A DNA stretch of 64,000 bases, taken from positions 354,310-418,309 of the forward strand of contig NW_018406620.1 in NCBI RefSeq assembly GCF_002113885.1, written 5' to 3'. Positions within the stretch are counted from its first letter, which is position 1. Each line of letters opens with the position of its first letter. This document shows, piece by piece, positions 19,272 to 62,196 of this stretch. The stretch is from Mizuhopecten yessoensis. Its lineage: Eukaryota. A program made the translations under genes and the position numbers. The notes under the pieces are model-generated. The model did not search any database, had not been told where the DNA came from, and worked only from the letters and a program-made list of their open reading frames with translations.

Positions 19272-19476
19272 GGCGAAGGTTTCACTGTACAGTGTATACA
19301 GTATATAATGGCCGTTCCCATCTGTAACATTTGTAGGCGTAGGGCGAAGGTTTCACTGTACAGTGTATACAGTATAACGGCCGTTCCCATCTGTAATACT
19401 TGTAGGCGAAGGGCGAAGGTTTCACTATACAGTGTATACACTATCAGTATATATAATGGCCTTTCCCATCTGTAAC
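19272..19476. repeat. ~70-bp tandem repeat, 3 copies
   Basis: GGCGAAGGTTTCACTGTACAGTGTATACAG...CCCATCTGTAA recurs three times. Confidence 0.85.
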
Positions 19477-22227: not shown

Positions 22228-22417
22228 AACGATCCCTGTACCTCTAATAAAAACTGTGCATTCAGGGAAACTCTTTATTCAGACATGACTATAGCTTTAA
22301 TAAATCATTTCTGAAAAGTAAATCATACCATACGCGACTTTTTATGAAGAAGAAAAAATAAAGAAAAAGAAACCCAAGAAGGTAGGAAATTCACCAGATC
22401 TGAAAGAAAACAGTCAA

Positions 22418-22639
22418 GAGTCCCAGATAAATAAATCGGCAATCACAGACCATGTCACACAGAAAAACCATGTGATTGACTGGGATAACGCCAAAGTTTT
22501 GGATAGAGAGAGCAATCTGTTCAAGCGGCAGATAAAGAAAGCCATCTGGATACCCCGCAGTGGACCAGCTCTAAATCGAGACGAGGGGGCTCAAAGACTC
22601 TCGCACATCTATGACCAAGTGTTAACAAAGCGTAGCTGA
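22418..22639 (+). mobile_element. Penelope-like retroelement, C-terminus of the GIY-YIG endonuclease
   Basis: Reads ESQINKSAITDHVTQKNHVIDWDNAKVLDRESNLFKRQIKKAIWIPRSGPALNRDEGAQRLSHIYDQVLTKRS*, with the typical SAI.EH..H.IDW..R.IKEAI..LNRDEG pattern. Not in the supplied ORF track. Confidence 0.85.
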
Positions 22640-22711
22640 ATTGAGTCATTTCGATACATTTATAACAACTATTGTACATTTTACACCTTTGTGTGCTTAC
22701 GCTTCATTGGT

Positions 22712-22777
22712 CATTTGTCTGATGCAGGTGACAGTGCACATATCGTACTAGTCATCGAAACGTCACATAGAAAAATG
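22712..22777 (+). ncRNA. Type-I minimal hammerhead-ribozyme-like motif, Penelope-associated, probably degenerate
   Basis: CTGATG(C)A, stem II GGTGAC-AGTGC/GTACT-GTCATC, GAAAC-GTC, with stem I arms CATTT-GT and ACA..AAATG, about 75 nt after the Penelope stop. The core has C in place of conserved A9. Confidence 0.55.
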
Positions 22778-24349
22778 TATTGGTTGTGTAAAAAGAACTT
22801 CTCATAATCCATACCAACCTGAAGGAAATGTTTAGAAATATCAATTAAGGGATACGTATCCTTAAAGTAATCATGTAAATTTAAATTCGTTATATGCATC
22901 TGTTCATGAATAGAGATAATACCACATGGCCATTTGTCAGTAACATTTGGTGATTGGTTTCATTTGAACGGTGGTCTGGTAGCACAGTTGCCTTTCATCA
23001 AAACGGCCGGCGTTTGAATCCCTGATCGGACATGAAAGGTATAGGGTCACCTGCCCAACCAAATGGGTTTTTCTCCAGGTATTATGTAATACATGTTGGC
23101 ATACCTGTTTGTAAAAAGTACGTAAATGATTGAACGACACTCAATGGGAATATGTAATACATGTAAGTTTGCATACACAATTTTGTAATACCAACGGGCA
23201 TAGATACAGCATTCCGTGGTAATTATGCTTATAATTCTATTTTCACTATGAATGTTTGTATAAATGTATCACATACATGTGATTTTTTGTTCCACACATA
23301 GTGTGTCTGAATGTAAATAAAATATTAAAATCTTGGATTCCTCCCATATAAAGATAATCTTGCGGCCGGCTTCCATCAGGGCAATCTAATTAAAATTATA
23401 TCTTCACATCGCTCCCGTTTACTGATACAGTCGAACCTCGTTATCTCGAAATCGACGGGATCGTTGGGAAACTTCGAGTTATCCGAGTATTCGAATTGAC
23501 CGAGTTCATGTGTTTGGCATAAAGCTTGGTAAAGTGTTTGGTCCAATATGAGGCTATATATGTCATTGAATTCTCTGACAATCAACGTATGTAAACAGTC
23601 GATAAATGACAAAAAGATAACTATATAAAATAAAAAATAACAACATATTCATAATCATATTCATTAATTCATTAATGTTACAATGTATGTCGAGAAGATA
23701 CTATTTCTCGTTAACTGAAAGGGCCGATCGATGGGCCCAATTGATCTTCGGATTAAATAATTTTGGGCTATACAAATGAGGGAACAGTTACCAAAAAAGA
23801 ATATTTGACAAGTTTTGACGGAGCAAAAAGCTTTGTGACGTATGACTATGAGTGTTACACATATAATAAAATGTTCAACCCCTGGGAGTTTTGACCCTGT
23901 CTCGTGAAATCAAGCGAATTCCGAGAAAGTTCGTTTGAATATGATATCCAGGCTTGAGCATGAAAACGGTTTCACCACGGACTAATCTTATTCCGTGGTT
24001 TCATGAATCTGCATAGCATAAACATACATGTAGCATCCACATAGGGGAGGGGATCGCCTCGTTATGTTCGTCAATGCTATTTAAGTACTTGCTGGGATTT
24101 TATTTAGTAATTCCGATATCACGGTGACGTGATGGACCTTACATTAGCTAAGATGCAAATAGTCGATTTTATTTTTGAAATTTTATATGGGGAAAGGGAG
24201 GGNNGGGGGGGGGTCATGGAAAGGAATGATTTTTGATTCATGTGCATTTTCGAGTAGTTTAAATTGAAACTAACGCATTGCGAATTATGACACGGCATTA
24301 ACTTGAACATGGGATGCCATTAATTATTCAAAAGAGATAATATGTACTA

Positions 24350-24583
24350 TAGACCACAGGGACCTGTAGAATTTATTACAGTACTATTTGGACCTAAACT
24401 GAGGTGTTTAGGAGTCATTTTACACGTTTTAGCACGGAATTAGATTGCTATCTATATAGTCCGTCGTGGTTTTAAACCCCTAAAGAGTGTATGATCTGAA
24501 CTCATAAAACGTGTACAATTACCCTGAACATCTCATTTTAGGTCCAAATATAGCTGTAACAAAATAGCATGTCCCTGTGGTCT
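24350..24583. mobile_element. MITE with long TIRs (TAGACCACAGGGAC...GTCCCTGTGGTCTA)
   Basis: Inverted terminal arms. A related larger copy lies at about 36197-36765. Confidence 0.75.
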
Positions 24584-25852
24584 AGATGTATATTTTCAGT
24601 TTCTTTACTGTCCTTTCAAAAACTTTGAAGATAATGAAAATAGTGGGGGTATCAAATGAGGAAGAAAAAATAACCATCCAGCTCACAATTGCCCATGAGA
24701 AGAGGAAGTTCAGAATGCCATACACATTCATAGTTGACCGCCCCTCCAGGCCAGCAGTGGTCAACACCCACCCAAACACATAGTCACAGTGCTACATATA
24801 GTGCGCTATTATATACGTTGAACTGGTCAGTTTGATTTGATGGATGTCATTCGCCTCTGGTCATCGCGGCGTACCCGTGTGTCCTATAGACTGGTCAAAA
24901 TCTTCCGGCTCCAGTCGTGTGCGATATATATTTCTACAGACTTACCTGGACGTGTACAAACAATCGGACAAGAATCGCCAAAGAGGTAAGGTTGTATTGT
25001 TACTCCACGCCAAGCTATACCAACTCTATGCAATTCACTTTGTACTGGTACTGCACTTAGAATACAAACAGGTGTATAGTCATTGTAATACTGTGTAAAA
25101 TGTATAGCAGGATCAGATAGATATGATATCCGCATCACCCCGACACCATTCTACTTCAGTGCAATGTTCACTAGCCTAATTTTATCACGACAAATTAAGT
25201 ATTTTTTAAAAATTAAAACCTTTCCAAGATATGTCTATAAATATGAGTATTTTGGTTATTTTGCTATAACATGATAATTTGAAATTAAAATAACTTGGCA
25301 TTTTGTTTATAATTTAAACCTTCCGGTGGGGCTACTTTTGACTACTTTCTACCGTTGCGCCATACGCATTTTTGTCGTTGGGTTGTTCAAAATAGAGTAA
25401 AACAAACAGTGAGTATATCGTTGAAAACATTTAAGTTTGGCCTTGTCTTTCATTCAACGTATGAAGATCTAAACATACATATGTTACATTACACCTAAAA
25501 TCAAATTATAAATAAAATCAATGCTTTAAAGCATGTCTTTAAAATAAGATATGGATTTATGCGTTTGTTTTCGTTTGGTGGCGATCATTTTGAATCTGAT
25601 ATCCTTCAAAGGCATTTAATACACGTCCTAGTTCTAATTATACCTGTTACTTTTTTTTTTTAATTTTATAAAATATAGTCTGGTTTGATAACTATCATTA
25701 TGTGCTACCTGTGCGAATTTTAAAGACTACAATTGTAACCTTTAACGGAGGTTATTACACAGATTTATTAACACGGATGCCGTATATTAACCGAGGAAGA
25801 AGTGCGTATTTAGAACAGGTACTACATGTATGTACACACCAGATACGTGGAT

Positions 25853-25968
25853 GTCACGTGACGTTATTACAAAAGTGGAATATGCTCGTTGAACTAAATG
25901 ACGATTCTTTTCTTCAAGGTCAATTAAAGTTCATCAAGGTCAACCAAAGTTCGTCAAGGTCAACCAAC
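25853..25968 (+). promoter_or_regulatory. GTCACGTGAC E-box and three TCAAGGTCA nuclear-receptor sites before the TMEM35-like gene 2 ATG
   Basis: GTCACGTGAC at 25853-25862; TCAAGGTCA at 25914, 25934 and 25954. Confidence 0.5.
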
Positions 25969-28924
25969 ATGGCTCAGCTAGCATTACACGCGCTGACCGG
26001 GTTTCTGTCCCTGGTATACATAGCTATGGGGGTCGTCAAGCTGTATCCAGTATCACAACAAATGGCGTTCGCTGTTGTAAGTATATTTAATGTATTTTAT
26101 GTTGATTGTAATCTTTTGATCTGAAACTTTACACAATCGGGAACCGTCGGTACTTTCCGTAAACGAGAAAATAATACTCCCGAGGTATTTTCTCGATTAC
26201 GGAAAGTAACGACGGTTCCCGATTGAAACTTTACAGTGTATTTCGGTCGTATAGACAAAGACTTAGTGTTGACAAAGAAAAAAATACATGGTTAATGTGA
26301 AGTTTTCTGACATCGAAAACTCGATTCAAATACAATGTATTCATGTTTTTTTTAGTTTAAATCAATTTTATTGCAACAAAAGACAAATGGATTGGACAAA
26401 AGTTATTGCAACTTAGTACGTCCTTTCCGTAACAGAAAATATATATACAAAATTAATGAGTCTCGTAATAACCTAATACAAATTCATATATGTATATATA
26501 TATAAGATGTTAAAGATGGGTAACAGCAAAAGAGGGAATGATAGGATTAGGGACACCAACGTATAGTTTTAAAATATGTATTCGGAGAGTTTACTTGAGA
26601 TCGCGTGTGTGATTTTCCCAATCGAGTCCGCGTAAGTAGTATAACTAATCTATACACACATATCCTTCTGCTTTTCTGTATTCATGTGCTTAGAAGATAA
26701 TGCATATATATGCATATCGGCATTTATTTGGTCATATTGCACATCTTAAAGTGTTTGTAAGAAAGCAACAATTTTATCAGTTTACATATAAAACATGCGT
26801 TTTAAGTGGTTAGAGTTGTACAGTGGGTGGAATCTTATTTACTGCGTGCTCGTTTTCTAATATATCTACGTAAAATTCACCAATGAAATCATTTTCTGGT
26901 TCCCAACCGCCTGTGTTCGCTCTGATTCACAACCGCCTGTGTTCGCTCTGATTTACAACCGCCTACGCCTCGTTCTGTTATAGTAATTAAACGTTATAAA
27001 AAAGTGATTTTTTGGCAGGATGATGTAGTGCGATAAGTAAAACTAAATTCCCACACAGGTGTTTGCTATAGAGGTGGAGCCGATGTAGAGGTGGGGCCGA
27101 TGTAGACAGGTAGAGCCGATGTAGACAGGTAGCAGTGTGGTTTGTTGGTAGTGGTTTGTCCTACATTCATTATAGAATCTTTTTTATTAACGGAGATTTG
27201 AAAATATAGAAACAATGAAGGAATGGAGGAAAAATATGACCCCTCTTTAAAAACGTCAACATTTTTAGAACGTGTTGGCAAATGCATTAATTGATGGGCA
27301 TTATATATACTCATCCTACAGTTCTACAAAGTTTTGTTGTTTGGTTTTTAATATTTATACGTGGACTTGTCGACAATGTTTAGTTTTTGACAAGTGAACA
27401 AAGCTAATAGATAATACTAACATATCAGGTTACCTTAAAGAGCAATGACGCCGAGTTTGAACTGCAAATGACGACAAAGGGCGTTCCTATTTATAGAATG
27501 GTCAGTGTTAGTAGTACCATGTAGGACTATCGGTGATATGGTCATGACTAACGTTTTAAAATGTCTTCAGTTGATGGCTTATTAGCAAATATCGTGCATT
27601 ATCATGTTATTGGTGAAAATTGAACGTGTTAGTATATTTAGGGATGGTGCGGCGTCTTTTTGGTGTGTATTGCAAGGCATTTTTGGATGGTGTGTCAATA
27701 GTTGGCTGTTTGGAAGTGTCTGTCGGCATATATCGTTAATGGTAGACGTTGGTCTATTGTCTAGGAATATATGGACACATATGTTGCAATGGTGCAATTA
27801 CTTCTGCCGAAGTGTTCAAATAACTCTGGAAATAGGTCGTTATAATGGTAAGCGTTTATCTGTTACCGAAGAATATCTGGAAATATGTTGTTTGTGTAAG
27901 TGTTGCAATTTTGAAGTATCGCTGGATAGTGGATATACACAGTCCTGTGCCAAATAAGAGGTAACAAACTACTTTCCTGCATATTTCAAGATTTCTACAT
28001 CTTTTCAGTGAATTAAGTCATGAAACGAAAATTTGCAACATGAAACAGAATTGTTTAAACTTTTCTCTCACAATATTTGTTTTTCCCGCTTAGCGGTTTT
28101 TAAGATGTGGCAAATCATTCAAAGGACATTATTTCTGTTGTGCCAGTTTGTTCTTTATCTTTAGAAAATTTTATATCTAGCCCGGGGTTATCTTTTTTTT
28201 CAAATTTAAAAAAACGTATAATGAAAAAAATAACAAGAGAAAAAATAAGACGAATTTCTTTATGAGGCAAATTTTTTGTTTCAGTAGAGTTACACTTGTA
28301 CAGTGATTTCAGGAAAGTTTATTGAAATGATGAAGAAATGCATGAAAAGTACAGGAAAAACACGCTTGTGACACTCGATTTGACACAGAACTGAGACTGT
28401 ATGTCCAGATATACTTCAAAATCAAAACAAAAGTCCTAGTAGTCCTAATAGCAAAACCGTTTCCAGATATTCTGAAAACAATGGTCGGTTTTGCTGTTTT
28501 TGAAGTTTCTTAGGGTGTTTTATCCTCATCTTGTATGTTTCCCCGTCGTCTTTAGGTATTGAAATGCTGTGCTAAAGTATCTGTGGGCATTTTGTATCTG
28601 ATGTAGTATTTTCTCGCTTTGTTTCAGCAATTTCGCTGTATGTTGTACGCGTCTGTGTTTCCCAGCGCGTGGTTAGGATATACGCCAGACGATGGCTTGT
28701 ACCGGATACTGACGGGCATGTTCGAGTTGTCTTGTGGACTCGCTATGTTGTCATGGGACCGGGAACTACGCCTGGGAGGCTGTGGGGTCCTCGTGGCGAT
28801 CATGGCTCTCATGGTCTGGTCAGGGCTAGCACTAGGAGACTACTTTTTTGTCTTCTTTTATGTTGCCGGTTTACTCCTTCTGTCCTTTGTGTTTGTGAAG
28901 TTTTGGAAACAGAAGCAGGACTGA
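25969..28924 (+). CDS. TMEM35B: TMEM35B-like membrane protein, gene 2, 134 aa; exons 25969-26076 and 28628-28924
   Basis: MAQLALHALTGFLSLVYIAMGVVKLYP..AV|QFRCMLYASVFPSAWLGYTPDDGLYRILTGMFELSCG..WKQKQD*. Its 108-nt first exon and phase-0 intron match gene 1 in size and position. Donor GTAAGT, acceptor TTTCAG. Confidence 0.8.
26134..26225. mobile_element. 92-bp palindromic MITE, CAATC...GATTG, 10-bp TSD
   Basis: Near-perfect hairpin flanked on both sides by AAACTTTACA (26124-26133 and 26226-26235). Confidence 0.85.
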
Positions 28925-30515
28925 GTTGAATTCTGGTGTAGAACTGATTAATTCCTGCAGTACTAGACGCATTTTTCAAAGGATGATATTTTGTAGCGTT
29001 TTCTAGCTGGGTCAGGATCGATCAGATGCCGATCAAGACATCATTGAATGCAAACGCACAGCATTGGAAACTGGACGTGTTCCTGTCATATCAGCCATCT
29101 ACCCATCTCGGTACACTAACATGTGTTCTGGTTAGATCCACACGTACTGTAGATTCGAATTTTGTGTCTTGTTAAAAGTATTTAGAATACTGCAAATAAC
29201 TTAACTTTTGCGGATATTTATTTTCGAATCTATTTGTCCAATGACATAACCACGAAGATTTGAATTCACAAAAGGAAACCGAACGCTCGTTTTTTCTGTT
29301 TTCTTGTGCCAGAATACAAATACAAATTTCTGGATATTTAAATAAGTGATCGCCTTTCTTCGCGAGCTAACGCGAAAATTTATTTTTCGAGAAAACAAAG
29401 TGATCTACAGACAGTATTGTTTGTGAAGTCAGTTTCGCTACAATTATAAAGTATTTGTTGTTATATTTTCACTGACTGCAATTAAAAATTCAATGATATC
29501 ATACAACATTTATATTTATAAATACATGTATACCTCTAATATATTAGATAAATAAATAAAAGAAGTTTATGTAAAAAAAAACCACTTTTGTTATTATGAT
29601 CACCATGCATGCACCTCGAAGTATATCTCTATACATTGTTGCTACACACTTCCAGGCTTATAAATTCGTCTTTTGAATGAAGAATAAAACCAATTTAAAA
29701 AGACAACAAAAAAAACCCCACACCAATTTAACTAATAATTGATTATTTTGGCTGAATGTTAGGAGCTTGACAAAACAAAAAATTGACGTTTCTCAGTTCT
29801 ATAAACTCGATAACATGTATTAATTAATCAAAAATGGTTTGTTTAATTCAATCATGAAATTTAAAGGAATTTTTTTTTTAAAAGATAAAGATCAATTCCC
29901 GCTAAAAATCCTATTCTCGGAAAACTTGTAACGAAAAATATTTACAAAAAAATAAATCAGTTTTGCTATGAATTTGAGCATTTAGGCGTAGACGGTGAAT
30001 GTATTGCACAGGGAAGATTCATTCGAATACGTGTACTATGTTGCTTAGTATATAAAACATTCTATATTTCTTTCGTATGTCGTTTTGTTATTGTTATTGT
30101 GCTGCTTTTTACGGCCCATTGTCAATTTTAAGTTTATCATTTATTCAATTAATATTATTCATCCACGACATTCTAAGGGACTACGCTTATATACGTTCTC
30201 TTTGTCCCGTGAATATGTCATGATGAAATCGAAGGCTGTATACAAACCATCTTATGGATGATATAAACAGACCGTTTTTACCTTTTCGTTGTGCATCAAA
30301 AGAATCGCGCGGCGACGTAACGGTAAACTCGACTGACTTTACAATCTGGTGTCGATCCTCTGTAATCTTCAAAGTAGCAGCCTAGCGACTGTCTTTTTCA
30401 CCTGAAATTAAACAAAAAGTTAACCGCTTGCCTTCGATTTCACCATGACATACTACAGGGGTGCAGAGAAACCTATTTGAGGCTATCCCTAGAATTGGAT
30501 GATATGGGTTAAGTG

Positions 30516-30589
30516 CAATAAAGAACCGTCAACAATTTCCGTAAACGAGTAAATATTTTGTTTACGGAAAGTGTCGATGGTTCCGATAG
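30516..30589. mobile_element. Older copy of the 26134 palindromic MITE
   Basis: GAACCGTC..TTTCCGTAAACGAG..TTTACGGAAAGT..CGATGGTTCC matches both arms of 26134-26225. Confidence 0.7.
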
Positions 30590-30638
30590 GGTTTTAGACT
30601 GATGTTCTGATTGCCGTTATATTTTCGCTGATTTACAG

Positions 30639-30971
30639 ACTAGATCGTTCCAAGCCTACGCGAAAGTGTGCCCAACCGTCCTGTTCGGATACATCCCCGA
30701 GCCGCAGAAGTACCACATGACTATAGGAGTCTGGGAGGCTTGCTGTGGACTCGCCCTACTGGTAGGGGACCGGGAACTGAAACAAGGCGCTTCCGGTATT
30801 CTCCTAGTAATCATGGGCGTGATGATTACATCTAACGTCATCATCAAAGACTACTCGACCATGTTCTTCTTTGCTATGCATTTCTTTTTTCTCTCGTTCC
30901 TTTTTGCTAAATATCGTCGGAGGTCGCAACCAGTAAAAACAGAGGAAGAGGAGAATTTCAAGAAGGAATGA
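30639..30971 (+). CDS. TMEM35B: Third TMEM35B-like terminal coding exon with no first exon of its own found (probable alternative last exon of gene 2; 146 aa if joined to 25969-26076)
   Basis: TTTACAG| acceptor, phase 0; TRSFQAYAKVCPTVLFGYIPEPQKYHMTIGVWEACCGLALLVGDRELK..IMG..ENFKKE*. Same register as the other two terminal exons, intact frame; AATAAA at 31143. Confidence 0.75.
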   Translation, partial: TRSFQAYAKVCPTVLFGYIPEPQKYHMTIGVWEACCGLALLVGDRELKQGASGILLVIMGVMITSNVIIKDYSTMFFFAMHFFFLSFLFAKYRRRSQPVKTEEEENFKKE

Positions 30972-35695: not shown

Positions 35696-38600
35696 TTATC
35701 TGTCTGCCCCAGACCTAACATCTGAGGATTCCAGAGTTTTCCCATTCTTAAGTCCATGTTTCTCCAGTAAATCTGATGTAGGTCGTAGAGCACTAAAACA
35801 AGCATAAAAACACAATTCAGGCACATCACTATAAAGGGAAAAAGGCTAAATAAATAATTTTGTGTTTCCGGTTACCCTACCTACCAACATTTTTCGTGCC
35901 AACCCTCACCTTTTTCAGGCCACTGTCAAAGATGCACTTATAAATTTAAGTCAAGAATTAAAAATAACTCCTATTTAAACTGAAATTATTTTTAGAAATA
36001 AAATTTGTAACCTTCATGTACCTATCCCAATTTTTTCAAATATGTTACAGGAAACATATTCATTTTTATGTTTGGCCTTGAGTATACTGTAATTTTAAAG
36101 GAAAAATACCAGTATGTTTCTGGTTATTGGTACATATATCAGTAATTATATTCCAGGCTCCAAAAAACTAAGACAATTTTTATTTCAAGGATCTCTGTAC
36201 CACAGAGACCTGAGAATTTGTTACAGCTATATTAGGACCTAAACTAAGGTGTTCAGAGTAATTTTACATGTTTTAGGGGTTTAGATCGACTTTCGGAAAA
36301 AAACTTTTTTAATATCAATGAGGTTGACGTCAGCCGCATGCCGAGACCCATGGTGTGATTGGGTGGAAGTGCAAGTTTCGCTAGACCAACCAACAGTGCA
36401 TACTTCAGCATGCGCTGACGTCAACCTCGTTAATATTAAAAAAAAAGTGTCAGGCTGCGAAAAACTCCGAAATGGTGTGTGTTTTTGGAGGAAACAGAGT
36501 TCATGTCCGCAGAAGGAGAATACAGTTTACGTGCATATAGGAGGTTTTTAAAAGAAAAATATTCCATCTTTCCAACAGTACTTAGCATTTTCCCGTTGAT
36601 CAACTAGAAATGTTGTTTTCCTCCCTTCTTCTTTATATGATCATTGGGGGTGTCATTTTTACTGAAAGTCGATCTAAACCCCTCAAACATGTAAAATTAC
36701 TCTGATCACCTTAGTTTAGGTCCAAATATAGCTGTAATAAATTCTCAGGTCCCTGTGCTCTGTACCACTGCCAATAACGGCAACTATATATTGAAAAAGG
36801 TGTGTTTTTCATCATGACTACCTTAGTATAGCATTGATATATCCTCTCTAAACATGATATAGGGAAAATAATAAAGACTACATATGTAATTGTAAATAGA
36901 GAATAATACATGCCTTTTTCCATATCACACCCAGTATCAACCCGAGACTGCAATATCAGCCCAAGGGCCGAAGGCACGAGGGCTGATATTGGTCAAGGGT
37001 TGATACTGGGTGTTATATGGAAAAAGGCGTGTGTTTTATTCTGTTTATTACATACCTACTAAAAACTACTATCTTATGATTTATTTTTATTTTTGAAATA
37101 TTGAAAAACGTTTTTTTTCCCCAAAAGGGGTGTGATATGGGTTTTGCGGGCTGCTACAGGTTTTGGGGTGTGATACGGCGAGGGCTGATATGGGTAAGAG
37201 CAATTGTGTCGTATCGCATATACAAAAAACCCGTATTTATTAGTAAGTATGTATTAAATTAATTTATACAGACAATAAAAATCTGTTTGGCAATTAATCA
37301 CTGAAAAATGATGATAAATCAGTGATTATACTTTCCTTATGAAATAAATCCCTCAACGGTCACCCAAATGCAAAAGAACTCTTATGAGCATAATATTTTG
37401 ACCTGGTCATATTGTGCAATATTGAATCCCAACAAACTAGCTATAGTTCGGAACAACCACAAAATATTACCTAACTACACGAAATTAAACAGTATAGTAT
37501 CAATGTTACTATAGACATCATGTTGGTTTAAATATTATTTGCAGAATGGTATCAGAAGATTTTGTAATACCACATCAATGCCAATGGGAATAGCATAATG
37601 AAGCAAATTTTATGTTTTTGTAGAGCTCTAGGGCTGCTTTTGTTTATTGCAATCTTAAAAGTTGGACCAGAGTTGTTCGTTTATGAAATAAGGTCCGACC
37701 TGATAATATGATGCTGTTTTGAGGCGAGCCTTAACAAAGCCTAGAAGGCCTGCATAAACATTTGCAGGTCAGCCAGGATTTATACCCGAAGATGTTTCAT
37801 TTAAAAACGGACAAACCAGTTGTTCTGCATACATGAACAGGCTCTAGAAAATTAACCATACAAAAATCCAACTCAATAAAACTCTTTATCATTTCATAAT
37901 CAATGATGATTTTGTGAGAGGTTTATTGAAGCTGAATATTCTGAAATCTCAAGACTACCTGCCATCCCGTATGATTTTGAAGACTCCCGTCTGTGACAGA
38001 TCTACAACGGTCGACCCCTGCCGAGACTCTGTTGTGTTTCCCAGCATTCCTCCGTCAAATACCAAATCTAATACCGGCCACAACTCGCGAAACTCCTGTA
38101 AAATATTCAAACCATTATTTTAATGTGTTGTTAGGTCCGCTCATTTAAAATACTTCTATTGTGTCTGTCTATGCTACATAAGACTCTTAACTTGTCACTT
38201 GGTTACATTAATATGTAAAACAGATCTATAATGTTATAACACCATTTTTTATTATTTTGTGTATATCGCCAAGCAAAAAATATTTTGTGTTTCCAGGGAC
38301 ACTACCTAAGTTTCAGTGCCTCTCTGAACTTTTTAGTCAATTTTCAAAGAAGCAATTGTATGTCAAGGTCACTCTCCTATCCTATATAAGACATATAAAA
38401 GTATTTTTGAAAATAAAATTTGCTACCAAACCTATATTTTTCATACATGTTACAGGAAACAAATGTTTTGGTTGATTGACCTAGTGAAGATTTCATTAGA
38501 CCAAACAATCAAATAATGTGTTTCAGAAGCCACAGAAGCACAGACACAGCATTGGCGGTTGATATTCTAATAATAGCTAGAACTAAAATGTAAGTAAACA

Positions 38601-50800: not shown

Positions 50801-53800
50801 CTCTGAGCTTTGATAAATAATTTCAGAAAAGAAATCATACTTTGTGGGACTTTTATGAAATAAAATGATATACATGTAGATGAAATAAACAGAAATAATA
50901 ACATGTACTACATGTAGCTGAGAGTAAAAATTCAGCAAAGCTAGACCAGGATTTGAACCCATGGTCTAAAATTGTTATACTGTTGCTTTCACCAACTAAG
51001 TTACATGTCAACATGCTCTTTAACGACTGCTCAACAGTTACCTGTGTATATCCAGAGAATGAAATTAAGGGGAGGTAACTACTGTATATACAAAAAAAAA
51101 ATGTGGAATTCTCAAGTGTTTTGCCTGCAGTGGGACAGATTCTTATGACATTTTTTTTTCTTTCGAATTTTGAACAACTTTAATTCTGTAACAGCTCTAC
51201 TGCATTAACTGGTGTGTTTTATATAATGTGGAATACATCTGAATTAATTACGTAATCTGCAAAGAAAGTTGACCTATTTCAATATCATAACTACATGTAA
51301 AATAAATAGTATTTGATGGACATTTTCATCAGGGTGTATGGCTGAGAATCTGAAGAAGAAGATCATAGAGAAAGACAAACTGGTGGATATCGTGTGCGGT
51401 CCTGATGCTTACAAAGACCTCCCTCGTCTACTGGACGTCACATCCACGGGCCAAGCAGCTGGTACAATGTTATTCATGTTGTCAGACGTGTCATATCATA
51501 TCTTTTGATTATGAATATAGTGTTACAACCTGTTTTAAGGATATGAAACACGCAATCTTGTGTTGATACAACATGATGCTATATATGGTGTATTACCCCC
51601 GTAGCCATAACTCCGTCTTGATTGGATCTCATCAGTTATCTATTGATCAAGTGACAAATTAAAACCAGAATTGATCCCAAACATTTATGCCCCCATTTTC
51701 ACAATATATATGGTCATTGTCGTGTTGACTGCCATTGTGTTTAGTTTTTGTGAAGGAGATTGAACATTGATATGGGTTACTGATGTCCCCTTAGACGTAG
51801 GTTTGTTTATGTGAAGGAGATTGAACATTTATATGGGTTACTGATGTCCCCTTAGACGTAGGTCTGTTTATGTGAAGGAGATTGAACATTGATATGGGTT
51901 ACTGATGTCCCCTTGGACNNNNNNNNNNNNNNNNNNNNNNNNNNNNNNNNGACGTAGGTCTGTTTATGTGAAGGAGATTGAACATTTATATGGGTTACTG
52001 ATGTCCCCTTGGACGTAGGTCTGTTTATGTGAAGGAGATTGAACCTTTACATGGGTTACTGATGTCCCCTTGGATGTAGGTCTGTTTATGTGAAGGAGAT
52101 TGAACATTGATATGGGTTACTGATGTCCCCTTGGACGTAGGTCTGTTTATGTGAAGGAGATTGAACCTTTATATGGGTTGATGATGTCCCCTTAGACGTA
52201 GGTCTGTTTATGGCTGCTTTTGTTTGGTGGTAAGAATACTTCGTGTAAACTTAAATATAACTTCTTGAGGCACTAAATACAAGCAGATTGCCACAAAAAG
52301 CACAATTACGGTCCAATCTCTCTTAAGGTTGATCTACTTCTTGGGGAAGGCTGCAGGCTTATAACTTATCACATTTTCAAGGCACTTTCCAAAGCTATAT
52401 TAAGAAAAGATGTCTTTCATTTTTTTGTCTTTTGATTGTTTGAACAGTCAAAAGATAATTAATATTTTTTACACATATTAAGCTCATTTAGCATTTTATG
52501 GCCTGAAATAAAATATTACTTTTTCCAAGCATTGAGTTAGTTGAATTGTACAACCCTCCTTTATATCAATGAAGAAGAATTATGTTATGCCTAGTGAATA
52601 TTCAAATCAAGACTACATTTTGACTTACACATACAGGTACTTGTCTGTGACATTTTAAATCTTGTTGAAGTGTATTTATATTAAACTATTTAAAATTGTT
52701 TGTCTTCAGTAAATGTGATGCTGTCGTTTGACGAGACATATGCTGATGTGATGCCAGTCAGAGTAAATAAAGATTCACCTTCTGCTTTTGTGTAAGTACA
52801 TGTATACGTAGTGAATCTAATTTGTATCTCTCACCTGTGTGTGTGTTCATGTTAGTTAGAGATTTCTCTTACCCTGAACAGGTGTATCTGCCTGGATCCT
52901 AGTGTAAGATTCGTATAATTTTCCACCTCCTTGGGGAAGATTCTTCAGTTGTTAAACACAGGGGTTTGCCAAGTGTTTTGCAACTTAAGAATCTTTCCTT
53001 GAGATTTGAGCATCCCAATCTCACCTCAATTCGGTGAATGATCCTTTTTCTTTTACCATGTTGACCCTGTCATATTCATAATGCAATGTTGATATTACAG
53101 GTTAGTGCATTGTTGACGTTCCATTTATGCATTGTTGACGTGACAACATTGTATTGTTGACGTGACATCATACGTCTTAACCCTAGAGTGAGGAAAGAAT
53201 ATCTCACACTGTGAAAGTGGCGATCCACCTTTCTCCCCTATTGGACAAAGATATCCACACTTCCAGTCAGGGGAAAGATATCTTTCGTTATGATAGGGGA
53301 ATCCCCCCGTCTTTACCCTATATAGGGTATAGAGTAAAGACGGGAGGGGGGGTTCCTCTATCATTACTATTGCATGACTTCACGTCAACAATAGCAAATC
53401 AAGGAAGATAACTCTGATCTGCTTGAAATAGTGAAATAAACATTTTCATTTCTTGAAATTACCACTTGTATTTGATATGGGAGAAAAGTAATTATTCTCC
53501 ACTTTAGGAGTAAGACAGGAAAATGTCAACCCTGGTGGTAAGATTCTCTGACCCTCGGCAAAGCCTCGTGCTAGACATTTACCTTGGGTTGAGATTTTTC
53601 TGTCTTACCCTCAAGGTGGGGAAAGATTATATTAGGTCGGGGTAAGAGAAACCCTTGTTTACCCTAGAGTTGAAACAAGGGACTTATTCACTCATTACCA
53701 TTTGTATAATGTTGTGTCGACTATTCATTGATGTCGTATCAACAATGCATTAGCGCCATGTCAACAATACATAGGGTCGACAGAGTAAGAGAAAAATAAT

Positions 53801-56800
53801 CCTTCCCTCTTCAGGATCTTTACTGTCCAGATAAGATGCCAAAACACTTGGAAAGCTTTGTTTTTGGCAACTTCAGAATCTCCATAGGTTGTGACCCCTA
53901 CTATTACACTGTTCACACCCCAAATGAGTGAAACATTTTATTAGTTTTCAATTTGTATCCCATGCATGTAAGAAGTCAAAAAGGGTGTAACATTATAGCA
54001 ATTCCTTTGCATTGAAGACGGAAAAATCTCAAGCCATTTTTTTTGAGGTTCAAAATGAGGCTTTGCTTAGTGCTGAACCTCAAAAATCTTATCACAAAGT
54101 CTTGCGATTTCTCAATGTACTTTATATGGGAACGATAGTATTCTCCTACACTTTCCTACTGTGAAAAATACTCCGAGATGTAATGATGGCAATTTCAAAT
54201 TTTTGCCACATACATACTATAAAGGAAGACGTCTTTTATCATTTTATTTACAGGTCTATCATGCGCGGCTGTGATAACATGTGTACCTACTGTATTGTGC
54301 CGTTCACTCGAGGCAGGGAAAGGAGTCGTCCCATAGCATCTATAGTGGAAGAGATTCAAACCTTGTCGGATCAGGTATACAGAATATGTTTGTCACATAG
54401 TTTAATTCACAAAAAAAAGTACCCAGGGGAAGCATATCAAATTATTATATTATCGTGTATCTCCTTATGGAGAAATACATATCTGGTCAAGAGCCTGACA
54501 GTGTATGCTTAACTCATTCACCCCTGAAGACACATTTGAACTCTTCCAATTCAAAGGTTGGAATAGTTCATTATAACATTTCAGGGGTGAATGAGTTAAC
54601 AGAGGTCTGAACACTTTCGTTTTTGATTATAAAAGATTTAACTAATTATATTTGTTTTCGAACAATAAATTATTATGAAACAGATTTTTACCACTTATAT
54701 TCTCCATCGATATATTCATCAGAATATAAAACAATAAAACTCAAATGATATAATAGACATAAACAGGATAATAGCTCCTTGCTCATTTCATAGAAGATGA
54801 TTTGGAATTTTAGCAACCAGCTATTATGTCATTTATGTCTTGTGTTATCATTTGAATTTAATGGTTTTATAATTGGATGAATATAATGAGGGAGATATAT
54901 ATAATGCAAGTAACTTTGTTTGTATTCATATATACCTACATGTATAAGTATTTGGGTGTGGGAGGAGTCCAGACATATTCATTCTGAACACTTTGGTTTT
55001 GAAGTATGAAAAAATATAAGCTTTATTTTGAAAAAAAATATAAGCTTTATATAGCTAACAACAGTTATAAAACAGGTTTTCCAAATGATACTAATCACCC
55101 TTGTTGGCAAAGACGAAAGTGCACAGTACCTTTTTAATACCCTTTCATGTCTGATAGGGGAATCAAATCCTGGCCTAGCTTCTTGGTGAAAAGCAAGAGT
55201 GCTATCAACTGCACCACCCAACCACCCTGTTTAAGTTTTTTCAAGAATGAAAAAAAATAAAAAAAATCTAGAGAAATAAAACACTGGAATCCATTTACAT
55301 GTAGTTAGAATGTAATTTAAGTCTAAAGAAGGTATGTTTTACAATTTCTATCGGTCTGATATAACAAGACCCTGAAAACAACTTTTTCAAAATTAACGAA
55401 TTAATGGAAATTCTTTTGTTTTTTTAGGGGTTAAAAGAAATCACACTCCTTGGACAGAATGTTAATAGCTATTTGGACAAGTCAGAGTCTAAGTTTTATG
55501 GAGGATTAAGTGCTGATGCTCATACGAAAAACAGTTCAGGATTTAAGACAGTTTACAAACCAAAGGTTGGAGGTCGACGATTCAGTGACCTGTTGGACGC
55601 CGTTTCTAGAGTGGACCCCAGTATAAGGATTCGATTCACCTCACCACATCCTAAAGACTTTCCAGACGAGGTTGATGATCGTTCTTTTACAAATTCCAAA
55701 ACTAGTTTCTTTGATATGAATTCGGGATATAATTCAATATCATTTGAGTTTAAGGATCCCTGTCCCACTGCACTGCTGTTTTCCTTACATTTGTATACAC
55801 ATAATATATATAGGATCCTACATGAGTTTCCATTTCATATGAAATTTATGAAACAAGTCTTAATAATTTTTAGAGGCTCGCTAAAATGAAAAATTCATGA
55901 CGAGTTTCATAAATTTCATATGAAATGAAAATGAGTGCAAGATCCTTTTTATCACATAATCGAGATTTGAGGCATTTGTTTGTGTAAAACGACAATTTTC
56001 ATGCAACCTTGAAATGTAAAAATCCGCCATTTTGACTCTAGTGCGCGAGTTTGTGACGTCATGTACTTGTCCTAGGCATGACGTCACAATGAAACAATTG
56101 AAACTTACAACCAATCACAGGGCTTATAGGTTATATTATATGGGTTTATACGCAAAAAATATATGACATGGGTATATTAACTGAATAACACAGTACGTCA
56201 TGTGATAAGACCTCCTCTTTACTTCAGTTCTACTTGTAGCACATTCGGGATAGTACACTCCCATTGACCAGGTAGCTCAATCAATCAACAATGATTATAT
56301 TTTCTTTATTACATCTTTATTGTTTTTCATAATAGTCCCCCAAGGTATGGTTTCCTTTTCGGAAATGATTTATCAAGGTTTTAGACATGAAAAAAAACCC
56401 AACAGTTTCTAATACTTAGCTACAATTTTTGGCAGTGGTGCTGTGATCCTTAAGGAGAAAGATTTGTGTGAATGATAAATTTAAGAAGGTTACAACAGCT
56501 TTACACAAATTCTGTCTTTGCTTTAAGTTAAGACTGGTTTTCACTTTGGGTGATACCTCTCTTGTCATCGGACAAAAATTGATCACTACATATTTCCATT
56601 TATCTCCATTTTACTGTGATTATCTCCCTTGAAGTAAATCCAAATAGTTGAGCTGTGTACACATTCATTCAAAGGGCAGGAAATATCTGCCTACAGACAA
56701 ATATAAGCAAGTGTCTATATAGCTACTAACCCAGTAGACTAGTGCACATTTGTTTTGTGTATAGTACTAATTAATCATAGCATATGGATTTGGACAGAAA

Positions 56801-59800
56801 AACTAGCCTTGTTTCTTTTAGCATAATATTCATGAAGTCTAATTGCACATACCCTGGTATGTGAAAACTTTTGGACCACTAAGTAACATCTCCAGGCAAG
56901 TAATCCACTTGTCCAAATGACCAATACTTTTGAAAACTTTGTTCTAGCCCTGGCTCATCATTTAAGAAAAAAATGTATATATTGCAACAGTTTAATTTGT
57001 AGCAAAAGTTTGGTATTATGCAGCTGGTTTTGCCATACATTTGGGGAGATATATAAAGGAAGGGTTTAAACTAAGGAAAAGGGAACATTCCAATATACAG
57101 GCAATATATGATACAGCAAATCAAAACAGGGTTATCATAACTGTAGTTAAATATTAATATGTGTAACAGGACCTAGTCAGATGTTCTTCCATTGAGTAAA
57201 GGGAAATTCCCTCTAGCGAGTTGCTAGAAATTGACCATAATCCTATGTACAATTGAAATCTGCCAGACTATTCTCCCCTTTTTAAATGTGTTCTTTCATA
57301 AACACCACAACAACCCAGGTTCTAACTCCCTGTCATCACAGTGAGGAGAACATGTGTAACAGGAAAGTGAGTGTTTTGCTTCCACCTGGGATGGAACTCA
57401 CAATCACAGACTTCCTAGTCAGATGCTCTACCACTGAGCTAAAGGAAAATTTCCACCGGCACAAAAGCTAGCTATAGACGCCTATTGTAAACCTATGTAC
57501 ATTTAAAATCTGCCACACACGGATATCTAAATTTAAAAAGGGGAAAAAATGCAATAATTGCAATTATTTATATTTATTTATATGACTTCGTCTGGTGAGA
57601 AGACTCTACAGCTAGTGGTTGTTTTTCTACAGGTGCTGTATCTGATAAGAGATCGGGCGAACGTCTGTAATCATATCCACCTACCAGCCCAGAGTGGCAG
57701 TACTTCCGTACTCCAGGCCATGCGACGAGGCTACACCCGCGAGTCCTACCTGGAACTTGTACATCACATCTGGGACATCATACCAGGTAAGTTTAGAGTT
57801 ATTTACTGACTGAATATGAAATTCTGAATATCATTAGTATTAGCATTAATGCTTATTTTCCATATTGATTAATGATAAAAACATCGTAATTTCACATGTA
57901 ATGGACAGTGATGGATTTTTATATTGATGAATATATGTTATATGGACTTGAAAAAATGATATTGACATTGACTTTGTCTTTGGCTGATTTGTTTAAGACG
58001 TATCGCTGTCCAATGACTTATAATCGTGGGATTATTTGGTGAAACTTTACATTGACTTGTTTTAGATATCTCGCTGTTCTGTGACTTATAATCGTGGGAT
58101 TATTTGGTGAAACTTTACATTGACTTGTTTTAGATGTATCGCTGTTCTGTGACTTATAATCGTGGGATTATTTGGTGAAACTGTTTTAGATGTATCGCTG
58201 TACATGTCCTGTGACTTATAATCGTGGGATTATTTGGTGAAACTGTTTTAGATATCTCGCTGTCCTGTGACCTATAATCGTGGGATTATTTGGTGAAACT
58301 GTTTTAGATATATCGCTGTCCTGTGACTTATAATCGTGGGATTATTTGGTGAAACTGTTTTAGATGTATCGCTGTACATGTCCTGCGACTTATAATCGTG
58401 GGATTATTTGGTGAAACTTTACTTTGACTTGTTTTAGATATCTCGCTGTCCTGTGACTATATTGTAGGATTCTCTAGTTAAACTTTCTGTAGATTTGACC
58501 GATTTGTTTTAGATGTATAACTATCAAATAAATGCATCGCAGATTCCGTAGTGAAACTTTACGTTGATTGGTTTGTTTGTTAGTCCCCAACCAGTTCCCG
58601 GGGGGGGGGCGGACTATAGGTTTTCACACTTTCACACTGTCCGTCCGTCCTTTCGTCCAAGAAGTTTGTCTGGGGCATATCTTCTATACTTTTTCACCTA
58701 GAGTAACCAGATTAGGTGATCAAGGACATCTTGGGATGGCGAGTGCAAGAAGTAGGTCACTATGACCTCACTGTGACCTATGCTTTGAACAGTAGTTACA
58801 TCCTGACATAAGTGTATTGTTTGTTAGATATAGAAATCATTACCAGTGGGGGACTATGGATTGCCTTGATTCAGATATATCACTGTCCAGTGACTTTATT
58901 ACAGGATTCTGTGGTGAAAGTAAACTTAGACTTGGTTGATTTGCTTTAGATGTCTCGCTAAACAATGACTTTATTGCGGATTCTGTGGTGAAACTTTGCG
59001 TTGATGTGGTTGCACTTGATTTGTTTTAGATGTCTCGCTGTCCAGTGACTTTATTGCGGGATTCTGTGGTGAAACTGAGGCCGACCATGTGGACACATTG
59101 TCGCTGATGGAAATCGTACATTACAACTTTGCGTACATGTTTCCGTACAGCATGAGAAATGTAAGTTTATTTTTTTTTTATATATAATGTGAATAGTTTT
59201 CGAAAAAGAAATTCTGTTTTTGTCGCTGTGATCTTTTGACCATATAAGTGACTGAAACATTTCATGTTTTATGTTCCATATACATCATCAACTATACATC
59301 TGTTTTGAACAAGAGTTTAAAAAGGTCATCACAGTCATCTATCAATATACAGTTATGGACTTTTATGATGCTCAATATGATGTTATTTGAACAAGAAAAA
59401 TTGATATCAACCTCAACTCAAGTATCCCTTGGTCAGTGATGTTTTCACATGATATTTACCATCACAAAAGTCTACAGTACACTTTTTGTTTTGTTACTTG
59501 TGTGGTCATGGTGTAACTGTGCACTGACATAATAAATTGGTTCAGGGCAATAACATGCTGACCAAAGGAGGCCAGGTTAAAAGAAGAAAGCAGTAGGGAA
59601 GATAGGAAGAGACGTTGACCGTTTTGGGGCCCATTATGCTACACAATGGTTTATTCGAAAGTATCTTTTCACAACACCAACTGGGGAAAAGACCACTGGT
59701 CAAACAAACACAGGTTTTGTCATAGAATTATGTGTGACAAAATCATTTTGTATAACAGAAAACACATGCTCACCACAAGTTAAAAGACGATGTTCCCGAT

Positions 59801-62196
59801 GATGTCAAGAAACGCCGCCATCTAGAGATCGCTAAAACCTTCAGGAAGGGAGCTCTTATGCGGAACCAAGCGCAGATCGGACAGAAACAACTTGTTTTGG
59901 TGGAATCTGTAAGTCTCCAGTTGCTGGCATGGTTCAGCTTTGTATATTTCAACCTCATGCAAATATTTTAGTTGTACATCATGAAACCTGTCTTGCAGAA
60001 ATTTGATCTTGTCAATTCATAAAATGCTTACTTGAACCGAGGAAAATGGACCATCTTCTTATTAACTTTCATTTTGTTTTTTTCCCCTTCAAATTGCCAT
60101 GTAATTGTTGTATGCCTGATAACTTACACTCCAGCCAAACTTTTCCCTTTCATTGGAAAAAACTATATTTTCCAGTGTATATTTCACACTATCATGACTT
60201 TACTATACTCAGTTTGCTGGGTACTAATTCATGATAAATTGTTCCTTAAGCAAAGAGCAAAAGGTGAAAGTTGAACTGTAATAAAAATTACCTGGTAGAG
60301 TAAATGGGATAAAATTTGATTAATGTTAGACTGATATTAGCAAGTATGTGTACACAGAACACATGTAGGATTTGAAGTTAAAGCGTACCACTGCATCAGT
60401 GATAATTATTGCAAAAAAGAGTTCCACTCAGATTTTTTGATTTTTTTTAATGGAGTATTCTCTCTTCTTTGCACAAGATGAAGCAACAGAGTAATCCTCT
60501 GTCAAGTTATTTATAAGCTTTGGGGTCCGTTACTTAATTCTATAATTTGTATTTTTAATTCCTGTATGTCAACATTGGTTAAATATAGGTTTTTCTGGCT
60601 TTTTTTTTTTAATTAAATTTTCAAACTGTCCAATTTCGAACGACCAGAAATCCGTAAAATGCTCCACAACCTGTGATGTTTACATTAAACTTGTTTAAAA
60701 AGTTTGAAAAATACTTAGCACCCGGTAAACCAATATTTGACAATACCTGGAAACTTTCGTCCAGTCAAACTTTCGCCCTTCACTGGTAATATGTCTATTC
60801 GCCCAGTGTGTATTTCGCCCTTCACATGTAAATACTATATAAGGTAAATTGTGTGCTAATATTCGTTGTCATGATAAATTCGCCCTTATAACGGAGGGCC
60901 AAAAAGGCAAAAATTAAAGTGCAGCAAAATTTTCCCCGTTATACCGTAGTTACAGTGGTAATGAAACCGTTTTACTTGTTGGTACGCTTTACCGGAGAGT
61001 CGGATATACTGCAATCATATTAAAATCATCTGTTACATGGCTCCGTTAACTTCATACAGGCATAGTACGTAGTTAACGGAGCCATGTAACACTTGATTTT
61101 AATCAGATTGGATAGACTGAAAAAGAAAAAAAAGAAAATTCTTTGACATTTGCTCTAATGACTTTATTAATATACAGGTAAGTAAAAGATCTACAGATGA
61201 CATGGCGGGCAGGAATGACGGCAATACGAAAGTTATCCTGGTCGGCTCCGGAACAACAGCTGTTAATGGTTTAAACCTTAAACCTGGAGACTACGTAGTT
61301 GCTGAGGTAATAATCATTTTTCTACATAAAGTTTTCAGTTTTTGAAACCTAATCTGTCCTATGGTGACCTTAGATATTATGAAAAGAACTTAACCCTTTT
61401 AAAACAAGTTACATTTTCTGATAACGTATTGTTACATCTAACCTTATGAAAGGGAGATATACTGTGTAAGTATTTGTTCTTTTGTTTCTGGATTTGCTTT
61501 GTTTGAGTTCTAGTTTTAAATCTCTGTTGTTCTACTCCTTCCAATAAAATGCTATCTAAGTTATAAACTTTTCTGCATCACCCACTGGAGTTGTGCAATA
61601 CAATGTATCTAGATCACTAACTTTCAATTCCATTTCAGTGGTCAGATTTGTGCAATATTTTCCTTAAAAAATCTTGTATGGGCTCAAGATCAGTTTACAA
61701 ACCCCATTTACATTATTTAACTTCCAACACAATATGAAAAACTGCGTTAAATATGCATATCATTCTGTTGTTCATGAGGGACAGAATACCTAATTATTTT
61801 GCTGATTGCTTGATAAGAGAAAAACTATGCAAAATCTTTGACAAGATTTACCTTATATTCAAATTTCAGTAATTTATGCAAATTTGAAGTAGTTACCATG
61901 ACAACCATAATGGAAAACAAATGAATACTTTCATGACAGTGTCTGGGAATTATTTAAAGAAATGACTTAGTGATTTAAAATATCAGATTAAGGTTTGGAA
62001 TTTTCATGAGTTAGGACCGAAGCAGGCCCAAACCATTTGTAGTCTTTTTCATTTTACTTTTTTTCAGATTGCTTCCTGTTCATCTCAGGTTTTACATGGG
62101 CTACCATTATACACCTGTTCAATTCAAGACTTTTACAGATCTGAACACAGTTGTCAGGGCAACAACAACCAACAACATACTGCTGTTGCCAGTTAG
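41824..62196 (+). CDS. CDK5RAP1: CDK5RAP1 / MiaB mitochondrial tRNA methylthiotransferase (radical SAM), 598 aa; exons 41824-42124, 47269-47372, 48665-48788, 51333-51461, 52710-52791, 54254-54374, 55428-55670, 57633-57786, 59030-59160, 59759-59908, 61178-61306, 62068-62196
   Basis: Arg-rich N-terminal presequence; [62 protein letters not shown] (CxxxCxxC), [39 protein letters not shown], and TRAM-like GRNDGN..PGDYV. All introns GT-AG; 1797 nt in frame; AATAAA at 62298. Confidence 0.96.
42513..43122. mobile_element. CAATC..GATTG non-autonomous DNA transposon with perfect 9-bp TSD
   Basis: ~85-bp TIRs; GGGTAACGG at 42504-42512 and 43123-43131. The same TIR occurs truncated at 23381. Confidence 0.88.
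43428..44604 (+). mobile_element. HINE/Helentron-like element with 146-bp repeats
   Basis: Same family as 15402-16581; AACTTCTTCT at 43518, 43664, 43810 and 43957. Confidence 0.82.
47543..47634. mobile_element. ~90-bp TTAA-flanked MITE (other copies 49356-49445 and 54509-54599)
   Basis: TTAA-CTCATTCACCCCT...AGGGGTGAATGAG-TTAA in three CDK5RAP1 introns. Confidence 0.8.
48098..48200. repeat. 26-bp tandem repeat, 4 copies
   Basis: AGAAACAACAGTGAGGGTGTGCTTAT repeated four times. Confidence 0.9.
51750..52212. repeat. 61-bp minisatellite containing an assembly gap (51919-51950)
   Basis: GTGAAGGAGATTGAACATTGATATGGGTTACTGATGTCCCCTTAGACGTAGGTCTGTTTAT units. Confidence 0.93.
52950..53880. mobile_element. 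Degenerate long-palindromic non-autonomous element(s)
   Basis: Inverted similarity between about 52950-53120 and 53740-53880, plus an internal palindrome at 53497-53622 centred on CTCGGCAAAGCCTCG. Confidence 0.45.
57986..59029 (+). repeat. Tandem array of ~56-80-bp units derived from the CDK5RAP1 exon-9 splice acceptor and exon start, interrupted by a small TE (about 58580-58858)
   Basis: Units TGTTTTAG|ATRTMTCGCTGTCC.GTGACTT..GGGATT..TGGTGAAACT are homologous to 59018-59077. Confidence 0.9.
61012..61110. mobile_element. 99-bp palindromic CAATC..GATTG MITE with 9-bp TSD
   Basis: Hairpin TGTTACATGGCTCCGTTAACT..AGTTAACGGAGCCATGTAACA; flanks GATATACTG / GATAGACTG. Confidence 0.8.

Follow-up and report, generated by a model that had tools for sequence, protein, structure and literature searches.

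A head-to-head pair of the tRNA A37 modification genes YRDC and CDK5RAP1 in the scallop Mizuhopecten yessoensis, other molluscs and amphioxus

Unrelated genes that have stayed neighbours over long evolutionary periods have been described before. Irimia et al. (2012) listed approximately 600 such pairs, termed CAMPs, each retained by at least four major taxa (PMC3514665). Here we describe the linkage of YRDC and CDK5RAP1, which lie head-to-head in the scallop Mizuhopecten yessoensis in a stretch of 64,000 nucleotides (assembly GCF_002113885.1, contig NW_018406620.1, positions 354,310 to 418,309 of the forward strand), further called the window. YRDC makes threonylcarbamoyl-AMP for t6A37, and CDK5RAP1 is responsible for the methylthio group in the ms2i6A37 of mitochondrial tRNAs (PMC11874988). 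For the yeast enzyme Sua5, two start codons have been described, the first AUG leading to the mitochondria and the second to the cytosol (PMC4615747). Both scallop genes are already present in the public annotations; the new element is that their pairing is recognised as ancient. We consider it likely that YRDC and CDK5RAP1 form an ancient divergent gene pair, with a single compact control region of about 200 bp from which transcription of both runs outward.

The divergent pair in the scallop and in other animals

A sequence-only reading of the window had placed the start codons of the two genes head-to-head at 41590 (minus strand) and 41824 (plus strand), 233 bp apart, and both positions were read as claimed. 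The YRDC ATG occupies 41590-41588 on the minus strand and the CDK5RAP1 ATG 41824-41826 on the plus strand, and the outer limits of the pair, 35696 and 62196, are the stop codons of YRDC and CDK5RAP1, respectively. The ATG-to-ATG spacer is AT-rich, with a CpG observed/expected ratio of 0.61, and is not a CpG island.

41591-41823, no strand: shared spacer, 233 bp, holding both transcription start regions, G + C content 0.38

To compare this arrangement between animals, full-length CDK5RAP1 orthologues were reached from scallop exon 7, and their loci were taken with 10-kb flanks and with coordinates based on the coding sequence (CDS). In six other species an opposite-strand Sua5_yciO_yrdC gene was found directly upstream of CDK5RAP1, with the following spacers:

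Ostrea edulis (bivalve): 357 bp
Mytilus edulis (bivalve): 238 bp
Haliotis asinina (gastropod): 432 bp
Octopus vulgaris (cephalopod): 332 bp
Liolophura sinensis (chiton): 328 bp
Branchiostoma (cephalochordate): 779 bp

The scallop YRDC exons were 52-71% identical to these six upstream genes, versus 38% to the scallop's own second YrdC paralogue (see below); the upstream partners are therefore YRDC orthologues. The linkage is thus present in four mollusc classes and in amphioxus and not confined to this one species, a restriction that the sequence-only reading had named as part of what would refute its proposal. An assembly artefact was ruled out by the presence of the pair in seven independent assemblies, together with the RNA data.

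Using tblastn with the scallop YRDC exons, no YRDC was found beside CDK5RAP1, within the 10-kb flanks, in Capitella, Lingula, Lineus, Ptychodera, Patiria and Tribolium. The genes had also been described as unlinked in human, which agrees with the published positions of YRDC at 1p34.3 (PMC4615747) and CDK5RAP1 at 20q11.21-q11.22 (PMC5707190); linkage in human and other vertebrates was judged from papers, and no human sequence was used.

The genes 3' of CDK5RAP1 differ between species (GFO_IDH_MocA, Utp14, SEP/UBX and RING/B-box genes in the Ostrea, Octopus, Liolophura and Branchiostoma loci), which shows that only the pair has been preserved, rather than a frozen block. We roughly estimate that, if a genome of about 20,000 genes were scrambled, a given head-to-head pair would form again by chance with a probability of about 1e-4 or less in each lineage. 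Because the same pair is found in molluscs and amphioxus and the chance of re-creation is this low, the common ancestor of protostomes and deuterostomes most likely already had it. Ancient linkages have been reported to survive in the largest numbers in amphioxus and a mollusc (PMC3514665). With such an origin, the pair would have come apart on at least four occasions: in the annelid/brachiopod/nemertean lines, in the ambulacrarians, in the line to beetles and in the vertebrates.

Transcription at the spacer was followed in three raw RNA runs at 1-7x depth, with X20 and X24 being stranded, and in one RNA contig. Both genes were expressed in the three low-depth runs. The YRDC junction between 41494 and 39859 (GT..AG, minus strand) was covered by 3, 3 and 12 reads in the three runs and by the RNA contig, which extends to 41604. 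In X20 and X24, YRDC exon 1 was covered only by pairs with the first mate on the plus strand (1.56 and 3.69, respectively) and CDK5RAP1 exon 1 (bin 41800-41999) almost only in the opposite orientation (1.77 and 0.75). At 41600-41799 there was zero CDK5RAP1-sense cover and 0.01-0.47 YRDC-sense cover, and no upstream untranslated exon for CDK5RAP1 was seen in the low-depth cover of this interval. From the opposite-strand cover with a near-empty middle of the spacer it follows that both genes start inside the spacer, roughly 150-200 bp apart. The description of the locus as operon-like in the sequence-only reading gives the wrong picture; with two separate divergent transcripts, an operon is ruled out.

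The YRDC and CDK5RAP1 genes

The names given to the two genes on first reading were confirmed by Pfam and NCBIfam profile matches, by named orthologues and, for CDK5RAP1, by an exact exon chain. Exons were searched singly against the profiles. The YRDC CDS consists of five coding exons (762 nt, 253 codons):

41494-41590, minus strand: YRDC coding exon 1, with AUG1 at 41590; the 41494 end is fixed by spliced RNA
39664-39859, minus strand: YRDC coding exon 2, PF01300 1.1e-14; spliced RNA reads place its start at 39859
38943-39177, minus strand: YRDC coding exon 3, PF01300 1.5e-14 and TIGR00057 2.5e-14
37959-38095, minus strand: YRDC coding exon 4, splice sites read, 60-68% identity to amphioxus and Haliotis YRDC
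35696-35792, minus strand: YRDC coding exon 5, AG acceptor and frame read, TAA stop at 35698-35696

The exons match Pfam Sua5_yciO_yrdC (PF01300) and NCBIfam TIGR00057 (threonylcarbamoyl-AMP synthase) and are 54-68% identical to the named YRDC proteins of Haliotis and Branchiostoma; exon 5 gave a weak tblastn match to the chiton locus. The KRSN tetrad distinguishes TsaC/Sua5 enzymes from YciO (PMC4615747). Of this tetrad, the K-x-R half (LKNRD) is in exon 2, together with the PTDT(I)YG motif, and the S-x-N half (LTSAN) is in exon 3. The scallop K-N-R and S-A-N align with K-Q-R or K-G-R and with S-A-N of Haliotis and amphioxus YRDC. No match to the Sua5_C domain (PF03481) was found anywhere in the scallop genome (the assembly behind the genome-wide searches is 987.6 Mb in 82,659 contigs), and the YRDC of the window is a short YrdC form without this domain.

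A second intron-containing YrdC-domain gene is present elsewhere in the scallop genome (C4236:54564-55240, plus strand), with a fragment at C4236:37241-37402 (minus strand). It is 38% identical to the YRDC of the window, matches TIGR00057 and has K-G-R and S-A-N. Its first visible exon opens at the catalytic domain, without an extension. Judged from its sequence, this paralogue might act in the cytosol only, in which case the YRDC of the window would be the more mitochondrial of the two.

CDK5RAP1 consists of twelve GT..AG exons between 41824 and 62196. When each junction was compared with the public M. yessoensis 'CDK5RAP1-like' protein P0275 (598 amino acids), the exon chain corresponded to it exactly, with one solution per junction:

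41824-42124, plus strand: CDK5RAP1 exon 1, presequence-like N-terminus, 100% identical to P0275 residues 1-100, sense RNA reads
47269-47372, plus strand: exon 2, start of UPF0004 (PF00919 3.4e-9), first cluster cysteine in YGCQMN
48665-48788, plus strand: exon 3, PF00919 3e-7, TIGR01574 2.3e-10, second cysteine
51333-51461, plus strand: exon 4, TIGR01574 positions 77-117, third cysteine in LGCMAE
52710-52791, plus strand: exon 5, small exon beyond the gap, found by motif, exact fit to P0275
54254-54374, plus strand: exon 6, PF04055 5.7e-7, radical-SAM CxxxCxxC read as CDNMCTYC
55428-55670, plus strand: exon 7, TIGR01574 and P0275 chain
57633-57786, plus strand: exon 8, TIGR01574 2.4e-13 and P0275 chain
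59030-59160, plus strand: exon 9, TIGR01574 1.3e-10 and P0275 chain
59759-59908, plus strand: exon 10, TIGR01574 scan and P0275 chain
61178-61306, plus strand: exon 11, TRAM region, P0275 chain
62068-62196, plus strand: exon 12, includes the stop, P0275 chain

UPF0004 (PF00919) was matched on exons 2 and 3, with the three cluster cysteines read in YGCQMN, MTCSIRE and LGCMAE, and Radical_SAM (PF04055) on exons 6 and 8. The TRAM domain (PF01938) is taken from the precomputed annotation of P0275; single exons alone gave no Pfam TRAM match. The MiaB model TIGR01574 was the best for 7 of the 9 CDK5RAP1 exons scanned, and all nine scored higher with it than with the MtaB models TIGR01578 and TIGR01579, with single-exon scores that cannot attain the full-length TIGR01574 cut-off of 355 bits. 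The protein is 55-60% identical to named animal CDK5RAP1 proteins, and a CDKAL1-type gene is present on another contig of the scallop genome (C5572; TIGR01578, 1.3e-14). Judged by profile and identity, the plus-strand gene is a member of the MiaB subfamily, not of MtaB/CDKAL1 or RimO.

The assembly contains a run of Ns at 51919-51950, which lies in intron 4 of CDK5RAP1 (51462-52709) and touches no exon. Tandem Repeats Finder showed that it is enclosed by a minisatellite:

51739-52212, no strand: minisatellite with a 61-bp unit in intron 4, enclosing the N run

There are 2.9 copies to the left of the N run and 4.3 to the right, in the same orientation and with 94% matches between copies. Exon 5 lies about 760 bp past the N run, and exons 4, 5 and 6 are in frame. 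No residue of P0275, or of its Pecten maximus orthologue P0298, is left uncovered by the exons flanking the run, and these exons also supply the missing stretch of the MiaB profile. Only repeat number is lost in the N run, and an unresolved minisatellite copy number is its cause.

Some further observations were made in and around the two genes. Intron 1 of CDK5RAP1 contains high-copy repeats at 42400-44700 with tens to hundreds of reads on both strands; these reads come mostly from copies elsewhere in the genome, because they are 95-99% alike with many loose ends. The open reading frames in this intron matched no Pfam family. A degenerate, partial copy of exon 9 is present at 58838-58924 (plus strand), about 100 bp upstream of the real exon and 52% identical to P0275 residues 412-436. 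No tRNA genes or Rfam RNAs were found in 35000-63000 of the window, and no recognisable gene was found in the 10 kb downstream of scallop CDK5RAP1, 38% of which consists of Ns. On the other side, a TMEM35-family gene (window 13827-30971) adjoins YRDC (35696-41590). Human TMEM35B is presumably also a neighbour of YRDC, at 1p34.3. In that case the vertebrate neighbourhood would be preserved on the YRDC side in the scallop, and CDK5RAP1 would be the gene that moved elsewhere.

Start codons of YRDC and the conserved block in the spacer

Both N-termini had been described as presequence-like, and their composition agrees with this: both are basic, with no acidic residue in the first 25. For CDK5RAP1 this stretch holds 4 basic and 0 acidic residues, and its N-termini across species are likewise basic and acid-poor. 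YRDC contains a second in-frame AUG at 41524 (AUG2; Met23, MAKVV), which follows a basic extension of 22 residues from AUG1. A conserved second Met (MAK/R followed by I/V I/V) was found in all seven paired YRDC genes after an extension of 19-36 residues, and it sits at the start of the catalytic domain. The extension itself is poorly conserved in sequence in the seven species; in composition it is basic, with no acidic residues or almost none.

The arrangement resembles that of yeast Sua5, a member of the same enzyme family in which AUG1 is followed by a basic extension and AUG2 lies at the start of the catalytic domain (PMC4615747). Sua5 differs from the scallop protein by its extra Sua5_C domain, absent from the scallop genome, and use of the two AUGs in the scallop is something we infer from sequence conservation only. 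The simplest reading is that YRDC probably serves both compartments from two AUGs, with an AUG1 form that would carry a short mitochondrial presequence and an AUG2 form that would start at the catalytic domain. The conserved second AUG would in that case extend the dual-targeting mechanism of yeast Sua5 to animal YRDC, and only part of the YRDC output would belong to a mitochondrial module. The proposal that the two genes form a module specifically for the mitochondria is weakened in that YRDC forms t6A on cytoplasmic as well as mitochondrial tRNAs (PMC11874988) and a second in-frame AUG is present in every paired YRDC.

Pairwise comparison of the spacers revealed one conserved block, close to the YRDC start, and no significant conservation elsewhere in the spacer:

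41616-41641, minus strand: conserved block by the YRDC start; in the YRDC sense an ATGGC box and then TGATGAAA
41638 down to 41621, minus strand: mini upstream open reading frame (uORF) in the block, 18 nt, MAASR-stop

Between the Ostrea and Haliotis spacers, 22 of 24 bases were identical in this block, with a maximum of 18 in shuffled sequences (z = 9), and the best scallop-oyster, scallop-abalone, scallop-amphioxus and oyster-chiton spacer matches were all to the same block. In scallop and amphioxus it consists of TTTCATCA, 9-10 nt and GCCATATTT, both species having the same order and strand. Its core, TT[GT]CATCA, was found on the same strand at 26-90 nt from the YRDC ATG in five of the seven paired species; in six unpaired species it did not occur on that strand within 1 kb upstream of CDK5RAP1. 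Scans of the seven spacers for ETS, NRF1, Sp1, E-box and TATA sites gave no shared pattern. In the YRDC sense, the block reads as what we take to be a YY1-like ATGGC box, followed by TGATG(A/C)AA, which presumably resembles a bZIP site (C/EBP-ATF, CARE-like). YRDC was not reported as an ATF4 target in papers naming both YRDC and ATF4. By eye, AGGTCA-type half-sites were spotted near the CDK5RAP1 side in Haliotis (locus L012, about 9870-9890) and in the chiton (L017, about 9975-9992; CGAAGGTCAAGGT, CGAAAGGTCGAGGTCA), and TCAAGGTCG in Mytilus (L011); these had no significance in the pairwise spacer test.

The YRDC leader, if it reaches 41600-41660 on the minus strand, holds several upstream ATGs including that of the 18-nt uORF. 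A uORF of this same length is present in scallop, oyster, abalone and amphioxus, its stop overlapping the start of a second uORF, which in oyster and amphioxus extends across AUG1 in a different frame. ATF4/GCN4-type leaders likewise have a short uORF followed by an overlapping one; here the second uORF follows the 18-nt uORF at once. They differ in that the uORFs of YRDC are read from DNA, the same bases also being read as YY1-like and bZIP DNA sites. The block could conceivably be a translational switch, in which the uORF pair would set the ratio of AUG1 (mitochondrial) to AUG2 (cytosolic) YRDC and the shared promoter would drive CDK5RAP1, together forming a stress-tunable unit. We regard this as improbable. 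If true, a unit of hundreds of millions of years old would set the A37 modification capacity of mitochondria for ANN and UNN codons.

Explanations for the linkage and comparison with described gene pairs

The likely explanation given above, an ancient divergent pair transcribed from one compact region, would account for the retention of the linkage in that a breakpoint would damage intertwined promoter elements. Joint transcription would probably balance the two A37 routes, for ANN-reading and UNN-reading tRNAs, and co-regulation of YRDC and CDK5RAP1 is plausible. Several points weigh against this explanation. With RNA depths of 1-7x in three runs, the data give no expression correlation, and the start sites are placed only roughly, as the X24 reads end near 41600 and X20 has about 94 nt beyond. 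Since the conserved block is confined to the YRDC side, it may serve YRDC alone. The core TT[GT]CATCA has a background of 1.1e-4 per base and a P of 9e-9, which is nominal since the pattern was chosen after seeing the data. Other species were inspected only within 10 kb on each side of CDK5RAP1. Of the seven non-mollusc lineages sampled, six do not have the pair next to CDK5RAP1, and neither does human, so that animals can do without joint control. The cytosolic work of YRDC and the second YrdC-domain gene weaken a purely mitochondrial reading.

The pair might also have been retained passively, by tightly packed core promoters in slowly rearranging genomes, without a benefit from joint regulation and with the common A37 theme as a coincidence. 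The short spacers (233-779 bp), the block on the YRDC side only and the loss of the pair in at least four other lineages that retained both genes would all fit this, as would the survival of the pair in exactly those lineages known for slow change in gene order, amphioxus and a mollusc (PMC3514665). However, the flanking genes were reshuffled in every species, so the region is not simply frozen. By our own estimate, mitochondrial tRNA modifiers make up roughly 30-40 of about 20,000 genes, and a random partner of YRDC would then be such a gene at a chance of about 0.2%. We consider purely passive retention rather unlikely. That separate rearrangements created the pair independently in molluscs and amphioxus is far less probable still. 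Six of the seven non-mollusc lineages sampled are without the pair and the amphioxus spacer (779 bp) exceeds every mollusc spacer, but the prior chance that a given pair arises in the same orientation is very low, at about 1e-4 per lineage (own estimate), and the block next to the YRDC start is common to scallop and amphioxus. A more speculative extension in the sequence-only reading, that the linked CDK5RAP1 acts on t6A to form ms2t6A in mitochondria, so that both genes would serve one pathway, is favoured by adjacency alone. It has to be considered scarcely credible in view of the MiaB-type scores (TIGR01574 best for 7/9 exons scanned, all above TIGR01578 and TIGR01579), the 55-60% identity to named CDK5RAP1 proteins across animals and the separate CDKAL1-type gene on contig C5572.

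It is rare for unrelated genes to stay paired over such depths of time, and every such case is the mark of a constraint on regulation that has held for hundreds of millions of years. Here the two partners are A37 modifiers for complementary codon sets, t6A for ANN and ms2i6A for UNN, both of which act on mitochondrial tRNAs. If joint control by the shared region is true, it offers a concrete route to how animals set mitochondrial decoding capacity, with the promoter of about 200 bp and its one conserved block as a handle, and the separated vertebrate genes may still share regulators. Among the papers searched, which did not include the pair list of Irimia et al., we found none reporting the positional link of YRDC and CDK5RAP1. 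The supplements of Davila-Lopez 2010 mention neither YRDC nor CDK5RAP1.

Of the described pairs, the classic mitochondrial example, HSPD1-HSPE1 (HSP60/HSP10), is similar in that nuclear genes for mitochondrial proteins are arranged 5'-to-5' at less than 1 kb and are kept across distant phyla (PMC3514665). It differs in being present in nearly all animals studied and in fungi, in having products that form one complex and in having a measured co-expression, whereas YRDC-CDK5RAP1 is kept in two of the nine major groups sampled and its products act in different pathways. With the CAMPs, the pair has in common that unrelated genes have been linked since early animals; CAMPs are enriched in 5'-5' arrangements with short spacers and are best retained in amphioxus and a mollusc (PMC3514665). 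Among the taxa sampled YRDC-CDK5RAP1 was found in only two major taxa (Mollusca and Cephalochordata), as opposed to the four or more of the CAMPs. It does show the 5'-5' arrangement with a spacer below 1 kb (233 bp in the scallop, 238-779 bp in the six others) and conserved intergenic sequence. Conserved divergent pairs are a known class, of which YRDC-CDK5RAP1 is a further member.

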